A stretch of DNA of 64,000 nucleotides, taken from Octopus sinensis. Taxonomy: Eukaryota. Under the pieces are notes generated by a model that did not search any database, was not told the DNA's origin, and saw nothing but the letters and a program-made list of their open reading frames with translations. Made by a program: the position numbers and the translations under genes. The DNA lies in contig NC_043005.1 in the NCBI RefSeq assembly GCF_006345805.1, positions 20,522,001 through 20,586,000 of the forward strand, given 5' to 3'. Of this stretch, positions 3,980-62,364 are shown one piece after another (position 1 is the first letter of the stretch; every line of letters begins with the position of its first letter).

Positions 3980-4216
3980 CTGATGATGATGATGTTAATA
4001 GATTTAAAGCAACTTCTGTACCAAAGCAAAGTACTATTGGACGGCTTAAAGGTGTGAAATTAAAGGAATGTCTTCATGCTTGCCAACTTTATCCAGGATG
4101 CTTATCTTTTGCGTACAATGAGGATTTTACATTGTGTAATCTGAATAATGCAAGTTCCGGAACTCAAGAACTTAAACCCAATGATAAAACTTGGGATACT
4201 TACTTCATTAACCCAA
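3980..4216 (+). CDS. Exon A1, PAN/apple-like domain (xDDDDVNRFKATSVPKQSTIGRLKGVKLKECLHACQLYPGCLSFAYNEDFTLCNLNNASSGTQELKPNDKTWDTYFINP)
   Basis: Acceptor ttttttccag, donor gtcagt, 237 nt. The C-x3-C-x5-C-x-S-F-x-Y...C-x-L pattern and terminal W-D-x-Y match the PAN module (4-Cys type). Confidence 0.88.
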
Positions 4217-4319
4217 GTCAGTAGCATTTTCATTTTATTAATTGTATGAGTGTTTGTGTATATTTACATATACCTATATGTGTGTACATAACAACATATG
4301 AATATATTTAAGTAACATA

Positions 4320-4660
4320 CGTTGCCTTACTGGCGCTTGTGCTGGTGGCACGTGAAAAAACATTCAAGCGAGGTCATTGCCAGTGCTGCTGGACTGGCAC
4401 CTGTGCAAGTGGCACATAAAAAGCTCCATTTGAGCGTAGCATTGCCAGTACTGCCAGACTGGCCCTCATGCCGGTGGCACGTAAAAGCACCCACTACACT
4501 CTCAGAGTGGTTGGCGTTAGGAAGAGCATCCAGCTGTAGAAACTCTGCCAGATCAGATTGGAGTCTGGTGCAACCATCTGGTTCACCAGAGCTCAGTCAA
4601 ATCGTCCACCCATGCTAGCCTGGAAAGTGCACGTTAAATGATGATGATGATGATGATGAT
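4320..4660 (+). mobile_element. SINE or LINE-tail repeat with (GAT)n tail
   Basis: ggcgttaggaag(a/g)gcatccagctgtagaaac...catgctagc...gttaaatgatgatg. Also at 11121-11460 (both orientations), 14740-14960(-), 36095-36350(+), 40930-41080(-) and 63070-63225(-). Confidence 0.7.
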
Positions 4661-4661
4661 G

Positions 4662-4697
<36 letters not shown>

Positions 4698-4791
4698 ATA
4701 TATATATATATTATATATATATCCAGAATTTAGAGAATGTATTTGATAAAATCTAGGTTACACATGTTATATAGCTAGCAAACCTCAGAAG

Positions 4792-4824
<33 letters not shown>

Positions 4825-7689: not shown

Positions 7690-8800
7690 GTATGCTCCAC
7701 CCTTTTCACCCAATGTTAAAACTTGCATGGGAAGAATTTTCCTTAGTTTAAGGATAAACACTTCACCCAATCACACATAACAGAGATTTGTTTAATAGGC
7801 ACAACCTGAGAATCTCGTTCAGTTGTGCACCCAGCATTAAGAAAATTTTAGTGAGTACCCCTAAGCCATGAGCAGAAGCAGTATGCTCATGTATGTGAAA
7901 TGACAACCAAGTGGGGATTGGTTAAAACTGCATGGGAAGAATTTTCCTTAGTTTAAGGATAAACACTTCACCCAATCACACATACAGAGATTTGTTAATA
8001 GGCACAACCTGAGATCTCGTTCAGTTGTGCACCCAGCATTAAGAAAATTTTAGTGAGTACCCCTAAGCCATGAGCAGAAGCAGTATGCTCATGTATGGTG
8101 TATAATGACAACCAAGTGGGGATTGATGTGAAGTTTAAGGTTTGAATTGGTAGCTAGCATTAACAGCCAGAGCAACAACCTAAGCACCAATGACACTACT
8201 AACAGCAGCAATGATGACAACAATGACAGTGGTGGCAGCAGTGCCTCAAGCAGCAGAGGCAACAATACCAACAGTCATGATGGCAGTTGCAACACTGACA
8301 TTGCGGCCAGGAGTGGCCTCTACACTAGCAACACATCTTCAAGAATAACAGCACTGACAGTGACTCTAGGACAGCATCTATGGCAATAAGAACAACATCA
8401 AACCTGGAGTTTATGAAACAAACATCAGTGATGGTGGTACATCCAATACACAAACAGTTCAACTGGGCCCCCATTTATACAATATCTGAACAACCACAGG
8501 TCCTCTATTAGGTTACAAGAAAGGCATAACATTACATCCCTACCAGTCACGTATGGCACTTAAAAGAGAAAGGAACATAAGTGAAAACTCTCTGAGCAGC
8601 CAGGACCTTATATTAATGGAAGCAAGCAATGTAAGCTTTGCTTGGCAGAGAGAGCAAGAATCCTAGAAAACTTACCTGACATGGAGACCTTTTTAAACTT
8701 CAGGAAAGAATTATGTTGTCAATGCCCACATCTAAAACATTTCCTACTACAAACCTGGAATTCCCCATTCATTGTGGCAGAGTTTCAAATATCACTATGG
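7690..8800 (+). mobile_element. Penelope-like element relic (post-RT linker plus GIY-YIG tail)
   Basis: PFSPNVKTCMGRIF...DKHF...FNRHNLRISFSCAP and YINGSKQCKLCLAERARI...LNFRKELCCQCPHLKHFLL are characteristic PLE motifs. Confidence 0.65.
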
Positions 8801-9039: not shown

Positions 9040-10793
9040 GAGGTTGAAAAGGAGCACACAAGTTGATATATATGGAAAAAAATGTCAAGATAGAAAATGC
9101 TAAAATAATCTTATAAAAAACATTTCAGTACCGATTTCAGTCATTGAGACTTTTTCAACTGTAAGTATGGAAAACAATTAAATTTGGAAAAATTAAAAGA
9201 ATATTTGTATAGTGTTCAAATACAAGTGGTATTTTCCTTGTTTCTGTCTGTCTCTGTCTCTCTTGTTTTCTCTTGTGGGTTTGAGGTCATTGTAAATTCT
9301 TGGTAGGGAAGAAGAAGAAGAAGAAGAAGAAGAAGAGAGAAGAAGAAGAAGAAGAAGAAGCAGAAGAAGAAGAAGAAGAAGAAGAAGAAGAAGAATGTGG
9401 GAGTGCCATGACAGTAGTATGTTGAATGATCAGCTGTCCTGAAAATGACCAGCTGTGGATGGTAGCGGTCACTGTTCAATTCACAAAACATCTCTTTTGA
9501 ATGTTTTGTGTATAAAATTTGCGTAGGTGTTATTCTAAACAGCAATATTGATAAAGAGTTAGGAAGGAGACAAAGAAGAAGAAGAAAGAGAAGGGAGAAT
9601 AAGAAGAAATGTAGGTAGTGTGAAAGTAGTAAGGTGTTAAATGTTCAAATGACTTAAAATTGGCAAGTTATGGATTATAGCAGTGATTGGGACTATTTTT
9701 TAATGAATTATTGGGAATCTCTTGTATGTATCATTTTTAATATTTGCGTGTGTATTTGTGTTATTCTAAGGCCATGGTGGATATGTCGTTTGTTGTAGAT
9801 GCGTTCAAAAAGGGTCTGTATTTTGTAATAAAGAGCGTCTCTTTACTAATTCGTTGGCTCCAGGTTGTATCGTCCCTGAATTGGTAGAGGGGAAAAATTC
9901 TGAAGCTTGGATTTTTGTTATTGGTGCAAATGTCTATATGTTGGCTGAATGCTATTTTTCTGTTTTGGGGAATTTTGATCTGGGATCTGTGCAGAGCCAT
10001 TCTTTTACATAGACTGTTTTTTGTTTGGCCTATGTATTGCTCTTGACACCCAGAGCAGGTTAGTGCGTATATCAGGTTCTCCAAAGCACATGTGAAGTTG
10101 CTTTTCACTGTGAAACATTGTCCATGTTTGAAGGAGAACTCTGATCCCGCAATTAAATTGTCACATATCCCACAGTTGGGTCTTCTGCATTTTTTTAATG
10201 ATAGTGCGTCTTTGGAGGATTAAGTTCATTCTGTGGTCCTTTTTTAGCAGGGGTATATTTTGGAGGATGGTGTCGAAGGCTTTATTTTTGAGAGGGTTGT
10301 GTGTGGAGATGTATGGTAGGGCTTTTGGTTGTAAATCTTTCTTTAATTTGGGATGTCTGAGTTACTGCATGTTGAGTTGAAGGGCACGTTGAAAGCATAT
10401 GTCAATTAATGAAGGTGAGTAGTTTCTGGTGATGAGTGTATCTTTTAGTTCATGTAGTCGTGTGTCTCTGGTGTCTGCATTAGAAACTATAGTACATATC
10501 CTTTTTGCTAGGTTGACGGGGATATTCATTCTGGTGTGTCTGGGGTGGCATGAGTTGAACGGTAAATATTGCTTGAAATCCATAGGCTTATAGTATATAT
10601 CTGTTTTTATTACATTGTTAGATTTCTCAATGAAGATGTCGAGGAAGGGAAGTTGTTGCTGGCTATATTCCATCGTAAATTGAATGTTTACATCAAGTCC
10701 ATTTAAAAGTGCTTGGAATTCTTTAAGTTTCTCTATATTTTCATGCCAAAGAATGAAACAGTTATCTAAGTATCTCTTCCAGAGACAGTACTT
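9040..10793 (-). mobile_element. 5'-truncated Penelope-like retroelement (RT C-half plus GIY-YIG endonuclease), inactive
   Basis: WKRYLDNCFILW (YxDD mutated to YLDN), LPFLDI, IYYKPMD..QYLPFNSCHP, then NLIYALTCSGCQEQYIGQTKNSLCKRMALH (ORF 9761-10108). A stop follows the RT part. Confidence 0.9.
9308..9395. repeat. (GAA)n microsatellite
   Basis: Visible directly. Confidence 0.95.
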
Positions 10794-11077
10794 TCTTGAT
10801 ACACCAAACATTTCAGTTGCTTTCGTTATGCTAGCACCTCCCAAACGAGCACCAACAACATGACCTCTTTGAAAGTCTGATAGATCTGTCATTTTAATGA
10901 ATATTAATTACCTTTTTCTGATGATATCTGAAAAGAAACAGCAATTTAGCAAAACATATTAAGCAACACTAATAATAAATCAAAAAACATAAAAATAAAC
11001 AAGAATTTGATGGTTTTATAGATATTTCAAAATTATGATGGATGCTAGGTGTTTCCATTATTTTGTCCAACCCCTCT
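10794..11077 (-). mobile_element. Tc1-like transposon 5' end (TIR plus N-terminal HTH)
   Basis: TIR-like ta|gaggggttggacaaaataatggaaacacc on the minus strand, and MTDLSDFQRGHVVGARLGGASITKATEMFGVSR, a Tc1 transposase N-terminus. Confidence 0.75.
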
Positions 11078-11120
11078 ACATGTATAGACATATATATATG
11101 TTTTCATGAAATATATATAT

Positions 11121-11460
11121 CATCATCTTCCTCATCAAAATTTAACGTCTGCTTTCCATGCTAGCATGGGTTGGACGATTTGACTGAGGACTGGCGAACC
11201 AGATGGCTGCACCAGGCTCCAGTCTGATCTAGCAGAGTTTCTACAGCTGGATGCCCTTCCTAACACCAATCACTCCGAGAGTGTAGTGGATGCTTTTACA
11301 TGCCACCAGCACAAAGATGGCGTTAGGAAGGGCATCCAGCTGTAGAAACTCTGCCAAATCAGATTGGAGCCTGGTGCAGCCATCCGGTTCGCCAGTACTC
11401 AGTCAAATCGTCCAACCCATGCTAGCATGGAAAGCGGACGTTAAATGATGAGGATGATGA
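11121..11460. repeat. Head-to-head inverted pair of the (GAT)n-tailed repeat (arms ~11121-11268 and ~11318-11460)
   Basis: The arms are near-exact reverse complements separated by a ~50 nt spacer. Confidence 0.85.
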
Positions 11461-11641
11461 TGATGATATACACATATGGGCGCAGGAGTGGTTGTGTGGT
11501 AAGTAGCTTGCTAACCAACCACAGGGTTCCGGGTTCAGTTCCCCTGCATGGCACCTTAGGCAAGTGTCATCTACTATAGCCTCAGGCCAACCAAAACCCT
11601 GTGAGTGGGTTTGGTAGATAGAAACTGAAAGAAGCCTTTTG

Positions 11642-11688
<47 letters not shown>

Positions 11689-12155: not shown

Positions 12156-12326
12156 ATTTTAAACCTGTTAAATGTGGACCTCCAAAAGATATTACTGGTG
12201 CATCAAAGTTATTCATGTCTACTACCTACAAATCTGTAGTGACATATACTTGCTCAAATGGAGAGAAATTTAAAGCGCAATGTGAAAAGGACAGTAAATG
12301 GTCTTTAGTACAACTTAGTTGTAAAG
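12156..12326 (+). CDS. Exon C1, Sushi/CCP domain (xFKPVKCGPPKDITGASKLFMSTTYKSVVTYTCSNGEKFKAQCEKDSKWSLVQLSCK)
   Basis: Acceptor caatttcag, donor gtaaaa, 171 nt, open frame. C-x-x-P...V-T-Y-T-C...C...W...C is the CCP signature. Not in the ORF track. Confidence 0.88.
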
Positions 12327-13027: not shown

Positions 13028-13267
13028 ATGTTCATTCACATTTTATAAAAATAAAAGAAGCAATACTGGATGTACCTGAGAAAACATTGTGGACAAAGAA
13101 GAAAGTAGCAGTAGACGCCTGTGCAAAACAATGTTGGTCTGACAAAAATTGTTTATCATTTGAAATTATTAAAAAAAGTGGCTACTGTTACTTATCAAAG
13201 AAATCTGCAGCTACTGTTACGAAAATAAAATCAGACAAAAGCAGAGATTACTACCAACGAGTAAAAC
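13028..13267 (+). CDS. Exon B1, PAN/apple-like domain (xVHSHFIKIKEAILDVPEKTLWTKKKVAVDACAKQCWSDKNCLSFEIIKKSGYCYLSKKSAATVTKIKSDKSRDYYQRVK)
   Basis: Acceptor attttag, donor gtaatt, 240 nt. Pattern C-A-x-x-C-x-S-D-K-N-C-L-S-F-E...C-Y-L-S...D-Y-Y. Confidence 0.9.
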
Positions 13268-13499: not shown

Positions 13500-14530
13500 G
13501 CATTTTTATATAGCATGTATTCACCTTAAACACTTATTTGCATCTTTTCTACACAAAATATATTCCTATTCAGAATAGTTCCATGCTGTTAAGAACAAAA
13601 CAGATAATAAATTAACTTAATTTGTTCTCAAAGATTTTGTCACTTCCTATCAAAATCCTTCCTTCTTGAAACCCAGAAAAAGTTAGCTAGGTTTGTTGAC
13701 TTCAGTATATGAATACTCATCAACACTTGGATGTCATTGCACACATGATAAATCTTTCTTGGTCAAAAAGGAATGTGAGCCATTTTCTGTATATCTATTA
13801 AGCTATTTAGTTAGGTCAAAATTGCAGACCTCATTGCAATAATAACCCTGAGCACTTTCAAGAAATTAATATAGATTCACAGTTTAAGTTTATGACAACA
13901 ATAACCTAATAAGTTCATGTAATATGAACAGCCATGCTATGAATAGGTTTATGAAGAACTTTAAAGGTATCTTCAAGAAGTTTGATTTAAACATAATGGT
14001 TACTGGTTACTACCAATCTAATTCTACATTCATCTAATTGGATTTTATTTTATATTTGAAGTCAGGTATCAATTTATCCTCAAGTAAAGATATTTTTGAC
14101 AGTATTTTTCACAAAATGTCACATCTTTCAAGAGAACCTACTATAAAAAGATCATACTTCATCTCCATATCTGAAGAGAGTTTGGAAGCGAAGAATGATT
14201 TGATTCAATCCTCATTTCAACTTAAATATCTCCATGAACTCAGTCAGGAACTATTTATCCTGCATTAGACACTATTTCTCATAAGTATCACAAGCTTACT
14301 AATGTGCATAGTGTTAAAGTTTGTTACTCCTGTGTAGATAACATTACTTTCAACATTGTATGCTACAAGAAGATTTCTTTTTTACCTATTTGCAACTGCC
14401 AAAATCAACCTACTCTGCTAGTAGAATTTTGCCTTTCTAAGAGAGTGGTGTGTAGAGCAACTCTCACTCCATCTGATAGTTTCCTATCAAATCAAATGGG
14501 TTCTGTAGACAACAACATCAATGAAATTTT
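13500..14530 (+). mobile_element. Fossil Penelope-like block, copy 2 (after B1)
   Basis: Colinear with 40-960. Contains VKVCYSCVDNI, resembling PLE VKVSYSCMPN. Confidence 0.6.
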
Positions 14531-15400: not shown

Positions 15401-15482
15401 TTTCCTTCACTTAGAGAGAGAGACCTTGGTTGTCAGAATTGAAAACTCTATGAACTGACCTTTCTCCATCATATATATATAT

Positions 15483-15530
<48 letters not shown>

Positions 15531-15535
<5 letters not shown>

Positions 15536-16117
15536 GAAAGAAGGTTTGAAAATGCAATTTAAAAGATGTTTATTTACTTTACCGGTTTCACTCTTTGGAA
15601 AAAGATTATCAAAAGTAACATGTGGAAGTTTGGTTGCGTTAATTATTGATTGTTGCAAATTGCTACATTACATAAATATATACAGTCTTTGGAAACAGGG
15701 ACATGTTAAGGACATAAAAAAGTACAACAGTATGTTGAGAATATAAAGAGGTTTAACAAGCTCATTGAAAAAATGGGCAGAAAAGATTAAAACAAATATA
15801 TTATACATCTCAGGGTAATTTCCAGGAGAAATTATTAAAAAAGTTCAGTACAGAATATTATGAATTCAAAAAGATTTACATTAATGTAGTGGCGAGGTTG
15901 TTACTGACCTGTCCGTTTTAGCAGTAATGTGGAATTGAAAAGGATGTACCCGTTTTTTTCTTTTTTGGCTTTCCTTCAAGCATCAATGATTTTGGGGTTA
16001 GGATGAGGTGAATATGTGTAGGATGGTGTGTGTATACGCATGCCTGCCCGTGCGCACGCGTGTTCGTGCACGTGCGCGTCTTCGCGTGTGTGTGGGCCAT
16101 ACACACACACTACATAT

Positions 16118-16148: not shown

Positions 16149-17845
16149 TCATACACATACATACCACACACACACACATCTCTCACACACACACACACAC
16201 ACATACACCACACATACACACATAATCTACACACACACAACACACACACACACAACACACATACATACAGAACACACACACATGTGTATGTGTATGTTAT
16301 ATGTATATATATGTTATATGTATGTGTATATGTATATGTATACATTGTATGTATGTATATTGTGTGTATATGTGGTATATTTATGTATGTGCATGTAAAC
16401 ATTATATATATATATATATGTATATATGTATATGCATTGTCTATGTATATATATTATATGTATGTATTGCGTATGTATGTTATATGTATATATTGTGTAT
16501 GTGTATTATATATATGCTGTGTATGTGTACTGTATGTATATATGTGTTAGGTGTATATGTGTTGTATTTATATTATGTATGTATGTGTGCGTGTGTTGTG
16601 TGTGTGTGTGTTATGTGTGTGTGTGTTGTGTGTGTGTTGTATGTGTGTATATTATATATAAATATATGTTATATTTGTGTGTTGTGTGTGTGTATTATAT
16701 GTATGTGCGTTGTGTGTGTGTGTGTTCTGTATGTATGTGTGTTGTGTGTATGTGTGTTGTGTGTGCGTAGATTATGTGTGTTGTGTGTGTGTAGATTATG
16801 TGTGTATGTGTGTTGTGTGTGTGTATGTGTGTGGTGTATCTGTGTGTGTATGTGTGGGGTGTGTGTGTGTGAGATGTGTGTGTGTGTGTGGTATGTATGT
16901 GTATGATGTGTGTGTGTGTGTGTGTGTATATATGTATATGTAGTGTGTGTGTATGTCCCACACACACGCGTAGACACGCACGCATGGGCGGGCACGCATA
17001 TACACACCATCCTACCCCCAAAAATTCTTTAAACAACACACATCTATTTACACCACCCTGAAACCAATCAAAAACAGCCCCCACACACACACAGACACTT
17101 GTATACGTGTATGTGCATGCACACAGGGACACACACACTCACCAATCTCACCTCCATACAGGCACACATATATACACACGCAGCACCATGTCAAATGCCA
17201 TCCACACACATACATGCGTACACGCGCACACACACGCACACACACAACACCATGACAACCACACACACGTTTGACAAACAGACACCATCTGACCAAATAC
17301 TACAGACACACAGACACATCTATTCACACCACATGTATATATATGCACACACACATACACGCAGAGACCACATATTCACCTCATCCTAACCCCAAAATCA
17401 TTGATGCTTGAAGGAAAGCCAAAAAAGAAAAAAACGGGTACATCCTTTTCAATTCCACATTACTGCTAAACGGACAGGTCAGTAACAACCTCGCCACTAC
17501 ATTAATGTAAATCTTTTGAATTCATAATATTCTGTACTGAACTTTTTAATAATTTCTCCTGGAAATTACCCTGAGATGTATAATATTGTTTTAATCTTTT
17601 CTGCCCATCTTTTCAATGAGCTTGTTAAACCTCTTTATATTCTCAACATACTGTTGTACTTTTTTATGTCCTTAACATGTCCCTGTTTCCAAAGACTGTA
17701 ATTTTATGTAATGTAGCAATTTGCAACAACCAAATTAACGCAACCAAACTTCCACATGTTACTTTTGATAATCTTTTTCCAAAGAGTGAAACCGGTAAAG
17801 TAAATAACATCTTTTAAATTGCATTTTCAAACCTTCTTTCGTATA
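15531..17845. repeat. Nested inverted duplication around a CA/TG/TA low-complexity core
   Basis: 15531-16016 is the reverse complement of 17371-17845, and ~16020-16180 mirrors ~16900-17020. Differences are mostly small indels. Confidence 0.85.
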
Positions 17846-17883
17846 TAATTCCACTTGTGCGATACCCCACAACTCAACTTTAT

Positions 17884-17912
<29 letters not shown>

Positions 17913-17921
<9 letters not shown>

Positions 17922-19241
17922 AAAGGGCTTAGTAAAATAAATTACTTTGCCGCATACTGAACTCATTAGAAATAGCAGCTAAAAAACTTTTTTAAGGCTA
18001 TTTCTAATACTTAAAGAAAATCTCTCTCATATATAGTGTTTGCTTAATTCAACTCACAAAAGTTTGGGGGTAAGGACATCGAAAAATCAAATGCTAAGGT
18101 TATTCGAGAACGTACGTTTCAAGATTAGTCAAAACAACATTTCTATCATCGGCTCAGAAATCCTTGGTTTGGATTTGGAAACACTGAAAATAAGAACATA
18201 CCCTTTCGAAGATCTGCTCCCAACTAACAGTGCCAACAAATTCAAAATAAGCAAGCGAAGAATCTCTGTTCTCCCCTTTCCACCAGCGTGGGTTAAAATC
18301 ATCAAACACTATGCTTATTTCGGTAAAATCCGAAGCATTAATCAGAGGGAGATTAATTATAATTTCAACAATTGAGGGCAAAATTAATTAATTATTAATC
18401 AATTTCACCGTACGTTCTCGAATAACCTTAGCATTTGATTTTTCGATGTCCTTACCCCCAAACTTTTGTGAGTTGAATTAAGCAAACACTATATATGAGA
18501 GAGATTTTCTTTAGTATTAGAATAGCCTTAAAAAAGTTTTTTAGCTGCTATTTCTAATGAGTTTCAGTATGCGGCAAAGTAATTTATTTTACTCCCTTTT
18601 ATATAATGTAATAATTTGAATTCGCCTTGAATGGTCCCTTTGCATACTGAACACTTGGTGAAATTGATTAATATTAATTAATTTTGCCCTCAATTGTTGA
18701 AATTATAATTAATCTCCCTCTGATTAATGCTTCGGATTTTACCGAAATAAGCATAGTGTTTGATGATTTTAACCCACGCTGGTGGAAAGGGAGAACAGAG
18801 ATTCTTCGCTTGCTTATTTTGAATTTGTTGGCATTGTTAGTTGGAGCAGATCTTCGAAAGGGTATGTTCCTTATTTTCAGTGTTTCCAAATCCAACCAAG
18901 GAATTTCTGAGCCGATGATAGAAATGTTGTTTTGACTAATCTTGAAACGTACGTTCTCGAATAACCTTAGCATTTGATTTTTCGATGTCCTTACCCCCAA
19001 ACTTTTGTGAGTTGAATTAAGCAACACTATATATGAGAGAGATTTTCTTTAAGTATTAGAAATAGCCTTAAAAAAGTTTTTTAGCTGCTATTTCTAATGA
19101 GTTCAGTATGCGGCAAGTAATTTATTTTACTAAGCCCTTTTATATAATGTAATAATTTGAATTCGCCTTGAATGGTCCCTTTGCATACTGAACACTTGGT
19201 GAAATTGATTAATAATTAATTAATTTTGCCCTCAATTGTTG

Positions 19242-23337: not shown

Positions 23338-23571
23338 CCACTGATGAGTTTATTACAGTTAAAAGTGTTGGTGCACCAAAGAAGGATCATTTTGGATGGC
23401 TTAGGAATGTGAAATCAAAGGAGTGTAATGAGGATTGCTATCAACATCCACTGTGTAATTCTTATCAGTACAATGAGAAACTTAAACATTGTGGTCTGAG
23501 TAATGGTACACAATTCACTCATGTACTTAAACCCAGCAATGAAGGTTGGGATACATACATAGTTAATCCAG
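23338..23571 (+). CDS. Exon A2, PAN/apple-like domain (xTDEFITVKSVGAPKKDHFGWLRNVKSKECNEDCYQHPLCNSYQYNEKLKHCGLSNGTQFTHVLKPSNEGWDTYIVNP)
   Basis: Acceptor tttttccag, donor gtcagt, 234 nt. Paralog of A1 with the 4 Cys conserved. Confidence 0.88.
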
Positions 23572-25149: not shown

Positions 25150-25319
25150 TTTTTGAACTGATTGATTGTGGATCTCCAAAGATGTTTTTGGTGCATCAAA
25201 GTCCTACAAGTTCACTACATACAAATCTGAAGTGACATATACTTGCACAAGTGGAGAAAAATTGAAGTCGGTATGTGAAAAAGACAATAAATGGTCTTGG
25301 GTAGAGCCTACTTGTAAAG
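25150..25319 (+). CDS. Exon C2, Sushi/CCP domain with a 1-nt deletion (frameshifted as assembled)
   Basis: Acceptor taattccag, donor gtaaaa, 170 nt versus 171 nt in the other four. It reads ccaaagat where C1, C3 and C5 have ccaaaaga(t/c). The downstream frame KDVFGASKSYKFTTYKSEVTYTCTSGEKLKSVCEKDNKWSWVEPTCK is intact. Confidence 0.8.
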
Positions 25320-28461: not shown

Positions 28462-28701
28462 GAACTGGGACCCATTTTGTGAAAGTAAAAAATGCAGTTC
28501 TGGATGTGGATGGGAAAACACCATTGCATATTAAAGATATAACAGCAGAAGCCTGTGAACAGAAATGTTGGTCTGACAAAAAATGTTTGTCATTTGAAAT
28601 AAGTGAAAGAAAGGAAATGTGTTACTTATCAAAAGCGTCAGCAGCTTCCTCCAATAAAATAATCAAAGTCATTGGCAAAGATTACTACCAACGAGTAAAA
28701 T
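28462..28701 (+). CDS. Exon B2, PAN/apple-like domain (xTGTHFVKVKNAVLDVDGKTPLHIKDITAEACEQKCWSDKKCLSFEISERKEMCYLSKASAASSNKIIKVIGKDYYQRVK)
   Basis: Acceptor aactctag, donor gtaatt, 240 nt. 41/80 aa identical to B1 by hand alignment. Confidence 0.9.
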
Positions 28702-32024: not shown

Positions 32025-32255
32025 CTGATGACGTGACTTTTGTATTTAAAAGTATTACCATACCAGGGCAGAATAATATGGGACGGCTTAAGAAATTGAA
32101 GTTAAAAGAGTGTCATCAATCTTGTCTACATCTAGGATGTAATTCTTATGAGTACAATGAGAAAACTAAGTTATGTGATCTAAGTAATGCGACTCACATG
32201 ACCCATGAACTTGAAACCAGCTTTGAACGTTGGGATCTTTATATTATTAATCCAG
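32025..32255 (+). CDS. Exon A3, PAN/apple-like domain (xDDVTFVFKSITIPGQNNMGRLKKLKLKECHQSCLHLGCNSYEYNEKTKLCDLSNATHMTHELETSFERWDLYIINP)
   Basis: Acceptor tttttccag, donor gtcagt, 231 nt, open frame. Confidence 0.88.
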
Positions 32256-36441: not shown

Positions 36442-36612
36442 TTTATGGAAGAATCAACTGTAAATCTCCAAAAGATGTTGTTGGTGCATCAAAGTCCTAT
36501 GATGTTACCACCTATAAATCTGAAGTGATCTATACTTGCCCAAATGGAAAAAAATTTAAGTCAGTATGTGAAAAGGACAGTAAATGGAGTTCAGTAGCAT
36601 CTGTTTGTAAAG
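36442..36612 (+). CDS. Exon C3, Sushi/CCP domain (xYGRINCKSPKDVVGASKSYDVTTYKSEVIYTCPNGKKFKSVCEKDSKWSSVASVCK)
   Basis: Acceptor ttaattccag, donor gtactg, 171 nt. Confidence 0.87.
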
Positions 36613-40153: not shown

Positions 40154-40324
40154 ATTATGAAAACATTGACTGCAGAACTCCAAGAGAAATTATTAATGCG
40201 TCGAAGTCCTACAGAACCACCACCTATAAATCAGAAGTGACTTATATTTGCCCAAAGGGAGAAAAACTAAAGTTGATATGTGAAAAGGACAGCAAATGGA
40301 CTCCAGCAGCAGCGTCTTGTAAAG
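40154..40324 (+). CDS. Exon C4, Sushi/CCP domain (xYENIDCRTPREIINASKSYRTTTYKSEVTYICPKGEKLKLICEKDSKWTPAAASCK)
   Basis: Acceptor caatttcag, donor gtaata, 171 nt. Not in the ORF track. Confidence 0.87.
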
Positions 40325-44050: not shown

Positions 44051-44379
44051 TCAGCCGATTGTAATGCATAAACATCATTTCATACTAATACAGCACATAT
44101 GTTCAAATGCTTGCGCGGTGTTGTGAAATTTCAAGAAATCTTTTGTCGACTTGGTTTTATAACAGCCTAAACAATATCTAATTTTCCATCAAAATCTCGT
44201 TACACATATGTACATAAATACATAGATATATGCAATACATACATACCAGCACAATACACATATGTAACTTTTAGAACTCTAAGAAAAATGGAGGTGTAAG
44301 GAATGTGCAACTTTAAGACAGAAGTGGTTGGTTGGTAAGCTTGCAATAGTTGTTCATATGCAGCGTTTCTGCTGTCCAG

Positions 44380-44945: not shown

Positions 44946-45458
44946 AAAAAAGACTGCAAAATCTGTAAAGTGATGAGTTTGTCATGATTAACCATATTCA
45001 GTTACATCCTTTTACAATTTTGGTTAAAATACCAAGATGCATTCTGCTTTTCATACTTCTAAAGTTGATAAAACAAGCTCAATTCAAGTACTGAAGTTGA
45101 TTTATTTTTCTCTATTGTCTCAGCAGAATGTGTGGTTATGTGCATATATGTTAGGAACCATTATTATTAGTATTGTTAACTTCAACAATAATTACTCATC
45201 TTAAGTTTGATGGATTGACAGATCATTCAAGCATCAGACAAAATATGTTGTGGTATTTGTTCTGGCTCTTTAACCTTTGTGTTCAAATCTTGCTAATGCA
45301 AACTTTGCCCATCCAGGGTCAATAAAATACAATGCCAGTCAAGTTTAGGGGCCAGTTTAATTGACCAACTCTTACCGCAAAGTTTTGCCCTTCATTCTAT
45401 TGGAAATTGTTATCATTATTGTTATTTTTCATCCGTCTAAATTTTACTTCAATTCTAG

Positions 45459-45695
45459 ATTCTCAGATCCATTTTGTGAAAGTAGCAAATGCAATTCTGG
45501 ATGTAAAAGGGAAAACATTATGGAATAAGAAAAAAGTAACAGCAGATGCATGTGCTGAAAAATGTTTGTCTGATAAAAATTGTTTATCATTTGAAATAAC
45601 TAAAGGAAGTGGAAACTGTTACTTATCAAAGCAAACTGCAGCTTCCTCAAAATTAAAGGGAAGCACAGACAGAGATTACTATCAACGACTACAAG
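45459..45695 (+). CDS. Exon B3, PAN/apple-like domain (xSQIHFVKVANAILDVKGKTLWNKKKVTADACAEKCLSDKNCLSFEITKGSGNCYLSKQTAASSKLKGSTDRDYYQRLQ)
   Basis: Acceptor aattctag, donor gtaatt, 237 nt (an in-frame one-codon deletion relative to other B exons). Confidence 0.9.
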
Positions 45696-48474: not shown

Positions 48475-50510
48475 AACTGCTGTTCAAAAGGAAAAGATCC
48501 ATTTTTGCTGCCACTGCTGGACATCAGTTCCACTCTCTTTTGGCTTCTTTCCCAGAGCTCGTAGATCCAACTTTCAAATCAGTGAAAGTCACACACTCAA
48601 CTCACCATTATATCACTACTTCTGGACCACCTGTTTTTTCGCGTCCATGGCGACTTGCTCCTGATTGGCTCAAAAAGGATCGATCTGAGTTTGAGCATAA
48701 GCTTCAACTTGGCCTTATTCTCCCCTCCGCCAGCCCTTGGGCATCTCCTCTTCATTTGGCATGGAAAGGGGATTCAGAATTTCGACCGGTGGGGGATTAC
48801 AAACGTTTGAATGCGGTCACTGTTCCCAATCACTATCCGATAAGAAATCTCCAGGATTTTTCTTCAAACTTGCATGGTTGTACTATTTTTCCCCTAGGTT
48901 GAGCTCATCCAGGCTTATCAAATTCTGATGAACCCTGACGACATTCCAAAAACTGCTGTTACCATCCCTTTTGGAAGTTTCGAGTTCCTGTTTACGAGCT
49001 TCAGTTTGTGGAATGCAATGAGTACATTCAAGAGGTTTATTGATGCAGTTATCCATGGACTTGACTGTGTGTTCACTTACGTGGATGATTTGCTCATAGC
49101 TAGCAATACGTGAAAATCACCTCCAACATTTATCTCAACTTTTTCAGTGTCTTCGTACCTACAATGTGTGAATCAACACCGAATTTCTAGGTCATTATAT
49201 TGACTCTAATGGTATCCGACCTCCCTCCCTCCTCCAAAATCAATGCAATTCAACGCATCTCTCCTCCCACTTCTTTACGCCAACTGCGTCATTTCTTGGG
49301 AATCATCAACTTCTACAGGAGATTCATACTTAAATGTGCAGACAAATTACTTCCCTTGCCTCAACTATTAAAAGCAAATAAAAAAAAATTCTATCATTTT
49401 ATCTGTCGAGGCATTATCTTCTTTTGAGTCAATCAAGAAGGAAAAAGCTTCTGTTCCTTTGCTTGCACATCTGGTTCTTGATGCTCATCTCTCTTTAACA
49501 GTTGATGCATCGGATTCTGTGGTCGGTGTTGTTTTACAACATACAGTCGATAATCAAATTCGACCTTTGGCATACCTTTCTCGTCAATTAAAGCCAGCTG
49601 AATGTTGTTACAGTACGTTTGATTGTGAACTCTTAACAATCTACCCATCAGTTTGTCATTTTCAATATCAGCTCGAGGGCTGAGATTTTGTGATTTATAC
49701 TGATCACAGGCCTCTTACGTTTGCTCTGTCATCTAAATCGGACAGATACTCGCCTCATGCTTTTCGTCACCTGGACTACATTTCCCAGTTCAAGAGTAAC
49801 ATTCGGCATATACCTGGAACAGAGAACATACCTGATGACGCACTCTCTTGTCTCCCTGTGTGTTCTCTTTCATCTCCTGCAATTGATTTAACTGCCATTG
49901 TGCAGGATCAGCCAGCTCTGGACACATTGGATCTAACTTCTACCAAGTTGTCCTGTTGCATGTTTGCCTATCTTCCACTTCCGTCTGCTGAAGGCACAAT
50001 CCTTTGTGACACAGACACTGGTTCTCCCAGGCCGTTTGTACCTATGAACCACCAGTGTTCTATTTTTAATGCCTTGCATTCACTGTCACATCCTGGCAGT
50101 GCTGCCTTGGTGAAGCTTCTTAAGGTTCAGTTTTTCTGGCCTAATATGCACTGGATGATCACCACTAGGGCATGCTCTTGTGTGAAATGCCAGCATTCTA
50201 AAATCCACAGGCACATTCGTGCTCCTCTTCGACAGTTTTCTCCGCCGGAGACTCGCTTTCACCATGTCCACATTGATCTGGTTGGGCCATGGCCTGTCAG
50301 TCGCGGTTTCTCTTACATATTAACATGTGTCAATTGTTTCTCTCATTGGCCTGAAGCCATTCCAATAGTGGACATTTCCACTGAGTCAGTTGCTTGAGCT
50401 TTCGTTTCTAATTGGATTGCACATTTTGGTGTTCCAGCTAAGATAACCAATGACCATGAACGCCAGTTCGAAGCTTCCTTATTTTGTGAATTATCACAAA
50501 ATGATCTCAG
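48475..50510 (+). mobile_element. Ty3/gypsy LTR-retrotransposon pol relic (RT-RNase H-integrase), no LTRs seen
   Basis: SPWASPLHL...FRPVGDYKRLNAVT..YPI, YVDDLLIAS, TVDASDSVVGVVLQ, IYTDHRPL, HSLSHPG...C-x2-C, HVHIDLVGP. The domain order is gypsy-type. Multiple stops and frameshifts. Confidence 0.93.
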
Positions 50511-52621: not shown

Positions 52622-52852
52622 CTAATAAGCCTTTGGAGCTTAAAAGCGTTAGCATACCCACGAAGGATACTTTCAATCAGCTTAAGGATAAGACTTTAAA
52701 GCAGTGCAATGAAGCTTGCCAAAATTATTATGGATGTTATGCTTATGCATACAGTGAGAAAGCTAAGACATGTGGACTTAGTAATGTGACTCAGTTGACT
52801 GATGTACTTAAACCCAACAATGGAAATTGGGATGTATATATAATGACACCAG
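52622..52852 (+). CDS. Exon A4, PAN/apple-like domain (xNKPLELKSVSIPTKDTFNQLKDKTLKQCNEACQNYYGCYAYAYSEKAKTCGLSNVTQLTDVLKPNNGNWDVYIMTP)
   Basis: Acceptor ctttttccag, donor gtcagt, 231 nt. Confidence 0.88.
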
Positions 52853-55170: not shown

Positions 55171-55341
55171 TCTTCTCAAGAGTTGACTGTGGATCACCAA
55201 AAGACGTTGTTAATGCAAAGAAGTCCTACACTACCACCACCTATAAATCTGAAGTGACATATACTTGTTCAGGAGGACAAAAGTTGATGTCAGTATGTAA
55301 AGAGGACAATAAATGGACTCCAGTAGCGTCAGGTTGTAAAG
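55171..55341 (+). CDS. Exon C5, Sushi/CCP domain (xFSRVDCGSPKDVVNAKKSYTTTTYKSEVTYTCSGGQKLMSVCKEDNKWTPVASGCK)
   Basis: Acceptor cacttccag, donor gtaata, 171 nt. This frame is not in the ORF track. Confidence 0.87.
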
Positions 55342-55369
55342 GTAATATAAATCGGTTCTCTCTTTCTAT

Positions 55370-56300: not shown

Positions 56301-56669
56301 GTCTTTTTTTTGCATGACACTATTGCCCAAGGTTCCCGTGGTCTATTCCGTAGGCTTTTTTCATCAAAATTAAGGACAATAAGTATTGTTACTATCAACA
56401 ATAATTATAATTATTCTTGTTGTTAAGGGTGATAGACTGACAAAATCATTAGGATATCAGACAAAATGTGGTATTTGTTCTGGCTCTGAGTTCAAATCTG
56501 GCAAATGTTAACTTTACTTTTCTGGGACCAATAAAATAAAATACCATTCAAGTGTAGGGTCAATTTAATTGGCCAACTGTTTCTCAAAGTTTTGACTTTC
56601 TTTATATGTTAGAAATTATTATTATGGTTGTTGTTGTTTTCATTCATTAAAATTTTACTTTAACTTTAG

Positions 56670-56909
56670 ATTCTCAGCTCCATTTTGCGAAAGTAGCAGA
56701 TGCAGTTCTGGATGTAACTGGGAAAACATTGTGGAGTAAGAAAAATGTAACAGCAGATGCTTGTGCAAAAAAATGTTTGTCTGACAAAAATTGTTTAGCA
56801 TTTGAAATAGTTAAAGGAAATGGAAACTGTTACTTATCAAAGAAAAGTGCAGAACTCTCCAAGACATTAAAGACAGATGAAAGTAGAGATTACTACCAAC
56901 GAGTAAAAT
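56670..56909 (+). CDS. Exon B4, PAN/apple-like domain (xSQLHFAKVADAVLDVTGKTLWSKKNVTADACAKKCLSDKNCLAFEIVKGNGNCYLSKKSAELSKTLKTDESRDYYQRVK)
   Basis: Acceptor aactttag, donor gtaagt, 240 nt. About 57/80 aa identical to B3 by hand. Confidence 0.9.
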
Positions 56910-57469
56910 GTAAGTATTTTTGGTGTTTTATTATTGGATTCTCTTTCCCTCTTTTTTTTCTGAAATTTGCCATTTCATTTGTGCTGCATAATATATAAAC
57001 AACCACATCTGTAAAGACATTAACACGTTTACCTATATAGACAAACATAGACACATTCTATACATAAGCAACTGTAAATACTGCTAGGACATTTTCATAC
57101 AACATTTGTTCACCTGCAACATTTTATGCATGTTTTCAGTCAGGCTTTTAGTGTAGAAAAGGCAACTCTTGTTTTTATTAACCGTAGTGGTGGTGGTGGT
57201 GGTAATGATTTCAAATTTTGGTGCAAAACCAGCAGCTTTGAGGGTCACTGATAGCAGATATCATCAATCCTGTATTTATATTAAGCCAAAGGGATGAAAT
57301 GCAAACTTGACCTTGGCAGAATTTGAAAACAGAATATAATGAGTTAGAAGTGGTACCACTAGGTGGCAAGGGTTTCAGACAATACCTTGTGACTAGCTGC
57401 TGTCCTTCACACTGTGTTATACAAAATAAGAGAAAAAGTAAAACCTATCTATGTGGTTGTGTGTGTCCT

Positions 57470-58560
57470 ATATTTTAGCATGGTTATTAGCCTTCCTATG
57501 GCCAACCATTTTACTACTTGAAAATAATACAGTTTCTCATACTACTGGAATCAGAGAAATTGTCTGCTGGGACTAAATAATCTGCTTAGCATAAAATAAT
57601 TTCCTATTCAGAGTTGTTTCATGGTATTGAGAACAAAACAGCCAGCAAATACATAGTTTGATCTGAGAGATTTTGACTGTTTTTATCGAAACCCTGGACA
57701 TCAAGGGAAATTCACTAGGTTTAATGACTTCAATATTTGGATACTTCTGAAATCTGGCATGTCATTGTTTTTGTGATAAATTGTTTTGGATCAAAGAGAA
57801 AGGTGATCTCTTTCTCTGTATATCTATGAGGATGCGTGTATTGTAAGAATGGCTTACAAATGCAGAAGACACTTTCATAGGAATTTCAGCTATTATTCCC
57901 AAGCTATAATAGCAACAAAGTAAGCAAACAGTCTCCAATTTATCCTCAGATAGTTATTTTAGTAGCATATTTACAAAATAACAAGGTGTTAGCTAGGACT
58001 GACTTTAGAGACAAATTAATATAAACAGAGTATCATCCCCCTCAATGCTTGAAGAGAATTAAGATGAGAAAATTCTCTTGAATTTACTCCTCTCATCAAC
58101 CTAAATGTCTCCATGAACACATGCAAGAACTTTTCAGCCTTACTTTAAACTCCATTTCTCCAGCACACACAATTACTTTAAGCTTATGAATGTGCATAGT
58201 GTTAAAGTTTGTTACTCCTGTCCAGATAACATTACTTCCAGCATTTTGTGACTACAGAAAAGCTTACACTTGTCCAGCCTTTTCCCACACATTTGCTTAT
58301 AACTACCTCAACCACTCCCCATCTCCACCTAGAGACATCTGTCTCACAATAACAGTGATTTATTGAGCAACTCTCACTCTATCTGATGAATTGTAAATGA
58401 ACTACATGGGACTTAAATAACTTCAAGGAAAGTTTCACTCAACATATATACTCCTTTAAGTTCATGTACAAGGAAAAATTTAACTGTCTCTTGTTTCATC
58501 TAGAGGCTTGAGGAACAGGAAAATGATCTACCCACCATAACCTTGAGCTTACTCAATGAA
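57470..58560 (+). mobile_element. Fossil Penelope-like block, copy 4 (after B4)
   Basis: Colinear with the other copies, e.g. aatgtgcatagtgttaaagtttgttactcctgt shared with copy 2. Confidence 0.6.
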
Positions 58561-58989
58561 CCCACTCCTTATTTACCAGAACATACAACTTCAGTCATTA
58601 TATTATGAAGTCATTGAAAAACAAAATCACATGCATATGTGTGTGCATATACATGAGAGGTATTTGAATATATATGTGTATGCATATAGATATGTATATA
58701 ATTGTGTAGTTTCCATGCATGCATGCATATATCATTTGTGAGATTTTCCAACATTGTTCTTGAACTAATAATTTCAAACATATAGTTACCTACCTACTTA
58801 CATGTGAGTATACCTGTGTACATACACACATACATACATATGTGTATGTATTAAAATATACATTCCAAATCAGATTGCTGTAGCATGGATGAATCTTATT
58901 GCCAAAAATGAAAGCTCTCAGTTGATAGAAAACTATATGCCTAAACAACTTTATACGAGCTGTCTCAACCAATTCCTTCAGGATCAGTG

Positions 58990-59310
58990 AATTCAATGAC
59001 ATTGTGACTGATGAGCCTGCAGGTGGAGAGAAGGGAATGATGGGATGTGCCAGATACCTTTTGATAAACAAAGCTATGCTGTCCAAAGTAAGAAAACATT
59101 GCAAAATCCCTGTGCTAATATTGTTTGATTATAGGAGAGCATTCAAATCTATTCCCCACACATGGCTACTAAAGTTTTTGCACTCAGTAAAAGTACCTGC
59201 TATCCTAGTTGCTGCCATTGAAAGGCTCACAAAGACCTGATAAACAATCCTACAAAGAAACAATGACAACACAAGGATGTTGATTAATCTCCCTTTTAAT
59301 AATGCTCTAA
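58990..59310 (+). mobile_element. R4/Dong-like non-LTR RT fragment
   Basis: EKGMMGCARYLLINKAML...LFDYRRAFKSIPHTWLL...VPAILVAAIERL resembles R4-clade GC..QLLID...DYKKAFDSVPH.W. Confidence 0.55.
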
Positions 59311-59329
59311 CCATAGTAGTCCATGAGAT

Positions 59330-61370
59330 TTATATCCGTCATATTTGGAGGTCATAACTTTTGTGTTATATCCTCAGCAGTCATGGCCCATGTTTCACTA
59401 CCACGTAGCATGGCTGTTCGTACACATGCATCATACAGTCTGCCTTTTACTCTGAGCGAGAGGCCTTTTGTCACCAGCAGAGGTAAGAGCTCTCTGAACT
59501 TTGCCCAGGCTATTCTTACTTTAGCAGTTACACTTTCAGCACACCCACTGACTTGGTCACCTAGGTAACGGAAGCTATCAACTATTTCTAGTTTTTCTCC
59601 CTGGAATGTGGTGGAAGTTGGTCTCTGTGCATTTTCAGTGTTTATTGCTCCTGAGTATCTGCTACATAAAAAAACTATTTTCTTAGTTAGCCTTCCTTTG
59701 ACATTGCTGCACCTCTTATCTGTCCATAGCTTACACATGGTACATCTTATAGAGTTTCTACCTATACCTTTTCTACAGATCGAGCAGGGCCATCTACCTG
59801 AAGGCGTTTGTGATTTGTCTACCTTCCTACTTATTAGGACTTTGGTTTTAGCTAGGTTGACTCTAAAGCCCTTCGATTCTAATCCTTGCTTCCACACCTG
59901 AAATTTCTCCTCCAGTTCTGATAGTGACTCAGCAATTAGAGCAAGGTCCTCAGCATAGAGGAGCTCCCAGGGGCATCCTGTCTTGAATTCCTCCATTATT
60001 GCCTGGAAAACTATGATAAATAGGAGGGGGTTGAGGACTGAACCTTGGTGGACCCCTACCTCTACTCGGAATTCTTCACTGTACTCGTTGCCCACCCTCA
60101 CCTTACAAGCAGCATTCCTGTACATGGCTTGCACAGCTCTCACTAACCATTCATCTATCCCTAGTTTCCTCATTGACCACCAGATAAGGGATCGGGGGAC
60201 CCTGTCGAAGGCTTTCTCCATGTCAACAAAAGCCAGCTACAGGGGCTTATCTTTGGCTAGGTATTTCTCCTGCAGCTACCTTACCAGGAATATAGCATCA
60301 GTGGTACTTTTCCCTGGCACGAACCCAAACTGCATCTCATCTAAACTGACTCTCTCTCTAATTAGTTGGGCTATGACCCTCTTTGTAACCTTCGTTACCT
60401 GATCCAACAGCTTGATACCCCTGTAGTTATTTGTATCTAAGGCGTCACCTTTACCTTTGTAGCAGTTGACTATTATGCTGCTACACTAGTCATTGGGAAT
60501 GACTCCTTCGTGTATCACCTGGTTAACTATACGGGTGACTAGGCTATAGCTGACACTACCAGATATTTTGAGCATCTCTGTAGTAATTCCTGATGGGCCT
60601 GGGGTTTTCCCTGTCTTCATGCTTCTAATCGCCTTAACTACCAAGGAACTGTCAACTCGGATAGCTGGTCCCTCTGTTGAGTCAACATTCGGCAGACTCT
60701 CTTTATCCCATTCATTTTCTTTATTCAGCAACCTTTCATAGTGGCGTCTCCAAACTTCTCTCTTTGCATCCTCATTTAGCGCAAGTGAACCATCATCCAT
60801 GCAAACAGATTTCTCTCCTACCACATCACGATTCTCTCTCACACACTGTCTTGCAACACGAAATACCTCAAGTCTTTCATCCTCACGGTGCAGAACATTG
60901 GCAAATGTTTTCTTATCTGCTTCCCCTCTGGCTAAATACACCTGCCTCCTAGCTTCCCTTGTGACAGTCTGATACACTTCCCTGCTACCACCGTTCTTCC
61001 AGTCCTTCCAAGCCTGTTTCTTTTGTCTAATATCCCTGTCAACAATATTATTCAACCACGACGTTATTTTGGGTCTTGAGGGGACTTTGCACCAACCACA
61101 GATCTGGTCAGTGGCTCTCAGGTTGTCTCTTAGAAACCTCCAGTTGTCTTCTACCCCATGTGAAGCTATATTTCCTTCTATTTCATCAAAGGCTTCAAGT
61201 AATATGTCTTTAAATCTCTGTCCATTTGCAGGATCTTTAAGCTTCCAGACCCTTCTTCTCCATGTTGATCATCTTCTGGTTGTCCTCTTAGTCCTGATCC
61301 TAAAGTCACTAACTACCAGTCTATGTTGTGGGGTACCACGAAAACTAGCAGCCATGAAGGGGCGCCTCTC
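59330..61370 (-). mobile_element. RTE-clade LINE, truncated at both ends, inactive
   Basis: PGPSGI, NYRGIKLL, FVDMEKAFDRVP, GVHQGSVLNPLLF, LLYAEDL (YADD mutated), a Cys-rich insert and GSETW. Endonuclease tail QHRLVVSDF. Several in-frame stops. Confidence 0.93.
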
Positions 61371-62133
61371 ATCTTTGGAAAAGGAATACTTAGTAGTAGT
61401 TATAAGAGACCTAATTGAGAGAGAGATATGTTGCAGATTTAGGGTAGATGCGTGAGCTAAATTTATCTTAAACATCGATAAGTAAGAGGAACTATAGAAT
61501 TATATATTTAACATGAGACGTGAGGCTGAAATTTATCTTAGACATTGATAAGTAAGAGGAACAATAAAATTATATATATATTTAACATGAGACTATATAA
61601 CAGATAATTATGTAGAAGTACCATGTAATTGAAATTTTAAATAAAATTTCATATGAACAATTTAATATAAAAACACAGGCCATCCACAAAATTATTTTTC
61701 GGTATAAGTCACCCTCCTAAGAATTAATGGGAACTCTAATACATAATGAGACCTACTTGGAACCTTGCCTCACTGTTTAGAATGTAGCTAAGCCATTTGT
61801 ACAACCCTCTTCTGATGGTATGCTTTTGCTTAAGACTGAATTACCACAACAACCCTTGATATGTTGGTTTACACCTTGACCCTTTAAAAGTACACCAATA
61901 GAAGATGGACGTAGAAGTGGGCATATGCAACTTCAATTTTGAAATAAATTTTCAAATCTGTCTCAACATGTGCTACAGCTCAAATTCTAAGTTGTCATTT
62001 TCCAATGAATTATTTGTTTGTAATAGATTGTCCATTTAAAATGAATTATGCACCAGATGCTATATAATATTTAATGTGTGTGTGTGTGTGTAAGTATGAA
62101 ATGTATTTCTTGTTTTCTTTCTTTTCTTTCTAG

Positions 62134-62364
62134 CTGAAGGTGTTTTAATATTTAAAAAAGCTTCGATACCAGGTTATGATACATTTGGTCAGCTGAAAAA
62201 TGTGAGCTTAAAGGAGTGTGAGCATACTTGTTATCAAACTCCAGGATGTAACTCTTATGAGTATCAAGAAAGTTCTAAAATTTGTGATCTGAGTAATGTG
62301 ACCCACTTGATTCGTAACCTCGAACCTAATGCTGAAGATTGGGATACTTATGTCATTAACCCAG
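62134..62364 (+). CDS. Exon A5, PAN/apple-like domain (xEGVLIFKKASIPGYDTFGQLKNVSLKECEHTCYQTPGCNSYEYQESSKICDLSNVTHLIRNLEPNAEDWDTYVINP)
   Basis: Acceptor tctttctag, donor gtcagt, 231 nt. Read directly from the sequence; not in the ORF track. Confidence 0.88.

Follow-up and report, generated by a model that had tools for sequence, protein, structure and literature searches.

A tandem array of PAN-Sushi-PAN module exons in Octopus sinensis, probably spliced collinearly

A stretch of 64,000 nucleotides (nt) of the Octopus sinensis genome (contig NC_043005.1, positions 20,522,001 to 20,586,000; hereafter the window) contains 14 plus-strand copies of three types of cysteine-rich module exon, named A, B and C. 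Thirteen of them are intact and one, B2, is frameshifted. The array probably arose by tandem unit duplication in a giant octopod-specific extracellular PAN-Sushi-PAN gene that is spliced collinearly by default, with cassette skipping of symmetric exons being possible. The window would then lie inside this gene, or inside several such genes arranged head to tail. The predicted product is a secreted, disulfide-rich protein with a repeated unit of one PAN/apple module A, one or two Sushi/CCP modules B and a PAN module C, each module being encoded by one exon between phase-1 introns. The default mRNA would join the intact exons in genomic order, and the product could act as an extracellular adhesion or recognition protein. 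An earlier sequence-only reading had considered whether the frame symmetry of these exons could serve combinatorial isoform diversity; the property that it described is a real but ordinary feature of a class 1-1 module array.

Module exons of the window

Exons were found by tBLASTn with the translations of three cysteine-rich open reading frames (ORFs), each copy being extended to the nearest in-phase AG and GT. In the following list a slash marks the splice site, with exon bases in capitals.

3980..4216, plus strand: A1, PAN/apple exon, 237 nt, phase 1-1; tttttttccag/CTGA ... CCAA/gtcagtag; 4 Cys; PAN_1 E=1.8e-9
12156..12326, plus strand: B1, Sushi/CCP exon, 171 nt, phase 1-1; caatttcag/ATTT ... 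AAAG/gtaaaata; 4 Cys
13028..13267, plus strand: C1, exon of the second PAN type, 240 nt, phase 1-1; caattttag/ATGT ... AAAC/gtaattat; 4 Cys
23338..23571, plus strand: A2, PAN exon, 234 nt, phase 1-1; ttttttccag/CCAC ... CCAG/gtcagtag
25150..25319, plus strand: B2, frameshifted Sushi exon, 170 nt; taattccag/TTTT ... AAAG/gtaaaata; 4 Cys; outside the 13 exons of the earlier reading
28462..28701, plus strand: C2, PAN exon, 240 nt, phase 1-1; first bases GA, last base T
32025..32255, plus strand: A3, PAN exon, 231 nt, phase 1-1
36442..36612, plus strand: B3, Sushi exon, 171 nt, phase 1-1
40154..40324, plus strand: B4, Sushi exon, second B of a B-B pair, 171 nt, phase 1-1
45459..45695, plus strand: C3, PAN exon, 237 nt, phase 1-1
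52622..52852, plus strand: A4, PAN exon, 231 nt, phase 1-1
55171..55341, plus strand: B5, Sushi exon, 171 nt, phase 1-1
56670..56909, plus strand: C4, PAN exon, 240 nt, phase 1-1; last base T; PAN_1 E=8.1e-10
62134..62364, plus strand: A5, PAN exon, 231 nt, phase 1-1

The 13 intact exons are all preceded by a pyrimidine tract and AG and followed by GT, with all 26 splice sites kept and no internal stop. Two leading bases finish a codon and one trailing base opens the next (phase 1-1), so that all 13 have phase-1 introns on both sides and a length divisible by 3, the pattern known as class 1-1. The introns between module exons range from 701 to 10,070 nt. This independently drawn map agrees exactly with the sequence-only reading in the number of its exons (13), their start (3980) and end (62364) and their length classes. 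The accompanying statement that every exon is of phase 1-1 applies to these 13 and fails for the 14th module exon, B2, which at 170 nt shifts the frame. Along the plus strand the exons run A B C A (b) C A B B C A B C A; B3 and B4 are the sole like neighbours.

Each exon corresponds to one Pfam PAN or Sushi match with exactly four cysteines. In the spliced 13-exon product, PAN_1 (PF00024) was recognized in nine stretches matching the five A and four C modules (E=8.8e-66), with a score of 218 bits for the array (cut-off 21.4), while A1 and C4 alone score 37.8 and 38.9 bits. The four B modules jointly match the Sushi family (PF00084) in four stretches (38 bits, curated cut-off 20.7, E=2.2e-9); B1 alone scores 20.5 bits (E=6.7e-4), which is borderline against the curated cut-off. 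All B modules carry the cysteine and tryptophan pattern C...C...C..W...C, and their PDB matches are CCP modules of complement receptor 2 (CR2; E=1.8e-8), DAF and CR1. When the A4-B5-C4 unit was used as the query, the CCP matches of complement receptor 2 and DAF in PDB covered its B5 part. An N-x-S/T sequon is present in all five A modules. To our knowledge, the PAN-Sushi-PAN combination occurs in no characterised protein.

The frameshift of B2 results from a 1-bp deletion in a run of A (CCAAAAG to CCAAAG), after which stops follow. The exon is otherwise intact and shares 60-70% identity with the other B modules. Either B2 is a pseudo-exon of very recent origin, or the deletion is a homopolymer error of the assembly; if the frameshift is real, the exon would be skipped, or the transcript would be sent to nonsense-mediated decay. 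An in-frame acceptor that might rescue B2 (AG at 25180-25181) was rejected, being located within the P-K-D codons of other B exons and lacking a pyrimidine tract; its use would also remove the first cysteine.

The window is AT-rich (31-41% GC in all 2-kb bins except one) and rich in microsatellites, with scattered retroelement ORFs, and is therefore animal nuclear DNA. Rfam and tRNA (ARAGORN) scans of the window gave no match.

Growth of the array by unit duplication

The flanks of same-class exons align well past the splice signals. Self-comparison of the window revealed paralogous intron segments of 200-900 nt with 64-77% identity, beside exons at 66-77%; homology runs through introns and exons, as in tandem segmental duplications of the CR1 type. 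Since the introns of like exons are homologous, whole A-B-C units were copied in tandem, introns included. The first 903 nt of the window (1..903, plus strand) match 29065-29849, 13542-14071 and 57429-58031 at 64-71% identity in self-BLAST. This homology to post-C introns indicates that another C exon is located just upstream and that the window is internal to the array. Because the exons are of class 1-1, the frame is kept whenever an exon or unit is gained, lost or decays; this property allowed the array to lengthen to dozens of modules in a single gene model, to accommodate B-B doublets and to hold B2, which now appears frameshifted.

Among class 1-1 genes, complement receptor 1 comes nearest: its CCP exons form long homologous repeats. 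The kringle arrays of apolipoprotein(a) are similar. Unlike in CR1-type genes, the octopus array is far longer and its copies diverge near the neutral rate. It shares with class 1-1 module genes formed by exon shuffling and tandem exon duplication the encoding of one disulfide-bonded extracellular module per phase 1-1 exon, the amplification of multi-exon units together with introns, and a copy number that can change without loss of frame (PMC8001218).

Several kinds of repeat occupy the introns. Inside the 10-kb C1-A2 intron, 15471-16018 pairs in inverted orientation with 17369-17913 (94-97%) around a 1.3-kb TG/CA-rich block, and a second inverted repeat pairs 17911-18409 with 18657-19151 (98%). 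Local tandem duplications are present at 1733-2343 versus 2301-2931 (86%) and at 7715-7920 versus 7921-8125 (96%); an extra match to B at 7876-7929 (E=0.4), lying within the latter and without module features, was rejected. Retroelement remnants are located at 9764-10892 (minus strand), 48540-50394 (plus strand), 59355-61055 (minus strand) and 44378-44712. The intron ORFs include a GIY-YIG endonuclease, read as Penelope-like, an RNase H with an integrase zinc finger, of the type found in long terminal repeat (LTR) elements, and an RVT_1 reverse transcriptase, probably of a non-LTR element. An inverted partial copy of this reverse-transcriptase ORF is found at 44378-44712 (87% to 59368-59693).

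A segment about 200-90 nt upstream of each C exon is conserved (e.g., 28260-28370, 45260-45370 and 56470-56580) and reads ...GTTCTGGCTC...GTTCAAATCTTGC... It looks like an old insertion, similar to short interspersed elements, that predates the unit duplications; ARAGORN and Rfam reported nothing for this segment. Its inverted matches of 13-18 nt are located at 43129-43147 and 26128-26145, the former within a dispersed repeat with copies at 1082-1229, 1368-1489, 22408-22543 and 43054-43202. Another dispersed repeat, of about 200 nt, occurs in both orientations in several introns (4469-4722, 11080-11477, 36178-36358 and 63015-63226; 80-90%). Inverted pairs of this repeat could in principle promote looping or back-splicing, and they bear no relation to the exon classes.

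Relatives and gene models in other cephalopods

In a word-index protein search the spliced window product matched only octopus proteins, and an exhaustive HMMER search, for which the O. bimaculoides relative P0005 served as the query, gave just 13 representatives below 1e-30. Long arrays are present in O. bimaculoides, O. sinensis and O. vulgaris, and none came from other taxa in the libraries searched. They comprise the O. vulgaris proteins CAI9728796.1 (4,283 amino acids (aa), named "ADAMTS20-like") and CAI9728790.1 (4,470 aa, "SVEP1-like"), the O. sinensis model LOC118764742 (2,643 aa) and the O. bimaculoides models LOC106869390, LOC106869402 and LOC128248837/38/40. In O. vulgaris at least five gene models of the family are encoded on one chromosome. 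Window modules share 50-78% identity with the database modules, 78% being the best value.

Genomic comparisons covered two O. bimaculoides loci (L001, on CM046610.1, and L005) and two O. vulgaris loci (L006 and L007, the latter on OX597823.1). The exons of L001 measure 231/234, 171 and 237/240 nt and are of phase 1-1, and the same sizes and phases recur in the other three loci. The donor motifs of the window and L001 are CAG/gtcagtag for A, AAG/gtaat for B and AAY/gtaattat for C. The octopus array proteins resemble the window in the three module types, the A-B(1-3)-C grammar, exon sizes, phases and donor motifs, but none of them represents the window's own gene and orthology is not collinear. 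In particular, collinear orthology with L001 was rejected: the best match (82.5%) lies around C4, and the neighbouring exons do not correspond. The lack of collinearity suggests lineage-specific birth and death of units.

Of the features of ADAMTS-9, ADAMTS-20 and GON-1, a name attached to the O. vulgaris homologue (a reprolysin metalloprotease, a disintegrin-like domain and TSP1 repeats besides the GON domain), only GON was found. The GON domain (PF08685) is listed on O. bimaculoides P0002, and O. vulgaris P0008 has a matching tail; LOC106869402 and CAI9728796 end in this domain, and none is encoded within the window. No protease or TSP1 family is present among the Pfam hits of the window product or in the Pfam lists of its relatives. 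The VWA, EGF and pentraxin domains that accompany Sushi in SVEP1 are likewise absent, the homologues recording only PAN and Sushi, and the name "SVEP1-like" is due to the Sushi match alone. A search of the literature for this family or its LOC identifiers found nothing.

Shorter relatives occur outside these three species. Acanthosepion (Sepia) pharaonis CAE1175485.1 (359 aa, PAN-Sushi-Sushi-GON) shares the module types and the GON ending, and Argonauta hians GAB1601772.1 (356 aa), consisting of a signal peptide and C-A-C-A, shares the module types. The cuttlefish and Argonauta relatives have one to four modules only. Within the libraries searched, Octopus-type genomes alone showed the large expansion.

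Gene-model boundaries across the cluster look arbitrary and inconsistent between annotations and species. In O. vulgaris, four models in a row on the same strand adjoin each other; they measure 861, 857 and 3,597 aa and, as judged from overlap, 4,470 aa, about 9,800 aa altogether. In O. bimaculoides, intact A, B and C exons are present at L001 4716-8124, within the "intergenic" 8 kb between LOC128248837 and LOC128248838; RefSeq has therefore split a single continuous array into fragmentary models. In O. sinensis, models P0012 and P0007 bridge boundaries drawn by other annotations.

Frame symmetry, selection and splicing

The sequence-only reading had stated that junction codons form no stop in any forward combination and that any forward subset of exons can be spliced in frame. 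Both statements are correct for the 13 intact exons, whose 78 forward junctions contain no stop codon. The first two bases are CT, CC, AT, TT, TC or GA, and the last base is G in nine exons, A in one, C in one and T in two. T ends only C2 and C4, GA begins only C2, and TGA would arise only at the backward junction C4 to C2 and at C2 to C2. The absence of junction stops is no more than chance predicts: its probability is 0.50 when the exons are reordered at random. Keeping the observed last bases and randomizing the dinucleotides at codon positions 2-3 gives 0.09, and drawing both last bases and dinucleotides from the codon usage of the exons themselves gives 0.13. Junctions are stop-free because the last base of 11 of the 13 exons is G, A or C, none of which can begin a stop codon, and this reflects the splice-site consensus, with G in that position in nine of the 13. 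The consensus G at this position also accounts for phase 1 bias (PMC8001218). In addition, the 13 phases are not 13 independent events, since all the exons descend by duplication from a single ancestral A-B-C triplet. Shuffled extracellular modules are as a rule of class 1-1 (PMC8001218), in agreement with the earlier caution that symmetry normal for such modules is, alone, no proof of alternative splicing. Frame symmetry is thus textbook; it accounts for gene growth, not for function, and gives no ground for ranking the locus as a candidate diversity generator.

Collinear use of the exons is supported by the gene models. Among 245 module transitions in 11 annotated octopus proteins, 226 (about 92%) are AB, BB, BC or CA, following the scheme A, one or more B, C, A; BB occurs 30 times, and AA and CC never. 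Models P0005, P0006 and P0003 use, in order, every module exon within their gene ranges (L001, L005 and L006). RefSeq labels no member of the family an "isoform", while an unrelated neighbour bears that label. The earlier view that the interleaved order favours constitutive concatenation is correct. The window follows a fixed A-B(1-2)-C grammar, found also in annotated octopus proteins.

The rate of evolution was estimated with orthologous Logan contigs (SRR11869384, SRR11869391) that correspond to A3 (L002), A1 (L003) and A2 (L004), introns included. Identity to the window is 82-85% in introns and 79-84% in exons; for A3, the exon shows 84.4% and the intron 85.3%. The ratio of nonsynonymous to synonymous substitution rates (dN/dS) is 1.2 for A3, 1.6 for A1 and 1.42 for A2, and 1.34 for the three combined (bootstrap confidence interval (CI) 0.80-2.30), a value above 1 that is not statistically established (P about 0.13); dN is 0.22, and the Kimura two-parameter (K2P) distance of the introns is 0.19. 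Between O. bimaculoides (L005) and O. vulgaris (L006), 12 orthologous exons (801 codons) gave a dN/dS of 0.83 (CI 0.60-1.22) at 84% amino-acid identity. Values among window paralogues range from 0.43 to 1.5. These patterns suggest that module surfaces are under diversifying or strongly relaxed selection on a constrained scaffold.

Several observations weigh against collinear splicing of a functional gene. Proteins of the window ORFs were not found in the databases searched, and a second word-index search likewise gave none. All long-array models lack a signal peptide or gene start, their N-termini being truncated. A dN/dS near 1, with exon identity not above that of introns, is also expected of a dying gene. 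Nineteen of the 245 transitions (about 8%) are BA, AC or CB and break the grammar, and the O. vulgaris model P0004 (857 aa) leaves two intact exons within its own range unused, an A exon (L007 33214-33447) and a C exon (L007 54614-54853), both of phase 1-1 and with normal-looking splice sites. The gene models behind collinear splicing are fragmentary and partly homology-based or ab initio.

Some of these points would fit a decaying, no longer expressed exon array in a pseudogenised segment of the cluster, as would the frameshift in B2, the dense intronic retroelements and a dN/dS of about 0.8-1.3 combined with exons (79-84%) that are no more conserved than introns (82-85%). Such decay is nevertheless very unlikely, because the frames are open, the cysteines are kept and exon indels are rare and in triplets. 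Under neutral substitution the chance of all 13 exons staying stop-free is about 3e-8. Every intact module has four of four cysteines, with 48/48 kept between O. bimaculoides and O. vulgaris, and the 26 splice sites are intact. In the comparison with the Logan contigs, introns show 13 indel events per kb, as against only two, each 3 nt long, in exons totalling 702 nt. A titin-like process, in which one long pre-mRNA undergoes regulated or stochastic cassette skipping with tissue- or cell-specific loss of symmetric exons or units, is a more serious alternative, although still rather doubtful. It would yield isoforms differing in size and composition without docking/selector RNA structure. The I-band tandem Ig and PEVK exons of titin resemble the octopus array as a very long run of symmetric module exons in which blocks can be skipped in frame; titin is an intracellular protein, and its exon skipping is documented. 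By this analogy, titin, which is listed among class 1-1 module proteins (PMC8001218), is the best model for how isoforms of the octopus array might arise. All 13 intact exons are symmetric and junction-safe, and the omissions in P0004 and the 19 irregular transitions are what such skipping would produce. In O. sinensis, the start of model P0007 (LOC118764741) falls within the orthologue of the C exon that P0004 leaves out. However, the omissions in P0004 may be an annotation artefact, because the O. vulgaris annotation is an EVM consensus that combines Iso-Seq and RNA-seq evidence with protein alignments and ab initio predictions. Likewise, three other models use every module exon within range, and the family has no named RefSeq isoforms. 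A real frameshift in B2 would make the skipping of that exon obligatory. The open frames kept in each of the other exons require their inclusion in functional mRNAs, though not in all of them. The splice signals also bear on skipping. C donors are weak and conserved (AAC or AAT before GTAATT, with U1 mismatches at -1 and +5), and A donors have a conserved non-consensus C at +3. Tracts of (TG)n lie +10 to +135 nt from the donor of 20 of 21 A exons, as compared with 0/31 B and 0/20 C exons, in three species (window, L001 and L005-L007); their background in the window is 1.2%, and flanking examples are found at 31978-31989, 62075-62090 and 62441-62454. UG repeats are known binding sites of splicing regulators, and the tracts could be either a UG-rich intronic splicing element or an inherited microsatellite, the latter speaking against regulated skipping. 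Between species, the conservation of intron flanks does not exceed that of the exons or of deeper intron, which also argues against regulated skipping. Looping by (UG)n-(CA)n pairing was rejected, as long TG and CA tracts are not positioned to bracket particular exons. A hydrophobic tail or alternative terminal form, encoded by the open frames that run 16-57 codons past C donors, was rejected too: the region is simply T-rich, and its alignment across paralogues contains gaps that are not multiples of three (for example, 14 nt in C2).

A Dscam-like mutually exclusive choice, placing one A, one B and one C (or one unit) in each mRNA via docking-selector base-pairing, is the least credible explanation and can practically be set aside. 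What favours it is exon paralogy with common phase and size. In Dscam, variants of one type adjoin, with short introns between them. In the octopus array, by contrast, the types are interleaved rather than grouped in a cluster of adjacent like variants between constitutive exons, and the introns (701-10,070 nt) are kilobases long and filled with transposons. The variable exon clusters of Dscam1 likewise comprise numerous paralogous exons, alike in size and phase, that code for portions of extracellular binding domains, and their variants are chosen singly via docking-selector RNA pairing (PMC3535345, PMC8042237). Such pairing was not found in the octopus array: minus-strand self-BLAST and short-word searches of the 300-nt sequences flanking each exon were used to look for a site that could pair with sequence beside at least three same-class exons, and revealed only dispersed repeats, (TG)n/(CA)n and chance matches of 10-18 nt. 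Moreover, gene models in three species string together 9 to about 60 modules, those of the relatives including many of every type, and a symmetric phase offers no frame-based bar to double inclusion. The "loosely Dscam-like" diversity proposed in the sequence-only reading therefore finds no support, given unclustered like exons, introns of 0.7-10 kb with retroelements, and the negative outcome of these searches for the intronic complementarity suggested there as a check. An octopod-specific hypervariable recognition gene is also improbable; it would combine near-neutral to positive divergence of PAN surfaces (dN/dS about 1.3 in A modules) with regulated skipping of dozens to hundreds of symmetric, junction-safe exons, perhaps steered by the UG tracts. 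If it were true, individual or cell-specific repertoires of a giant secreted receptor would follow, and octopuses would have a third route to invertebrate somatic diversity, beside arthropod Dscam-hv and mollusc FREPs.

Overall, tandem unit duplication with collinear splicing by default is the preferred reading. The genomes of octopuses contain a very large, previously undescribed array in which PAN-Sushi-PAN exons are repeated in tandem, a locus that current annotations fragment. The size of the family, its octopod restriction, the GON ending and the near-neutral rate are of greater interest than frame symmetry. An intron-like rate of change on a strict fold scaffold is typical of proteins at immune, gamete-recognition or host-parasite interfaces.

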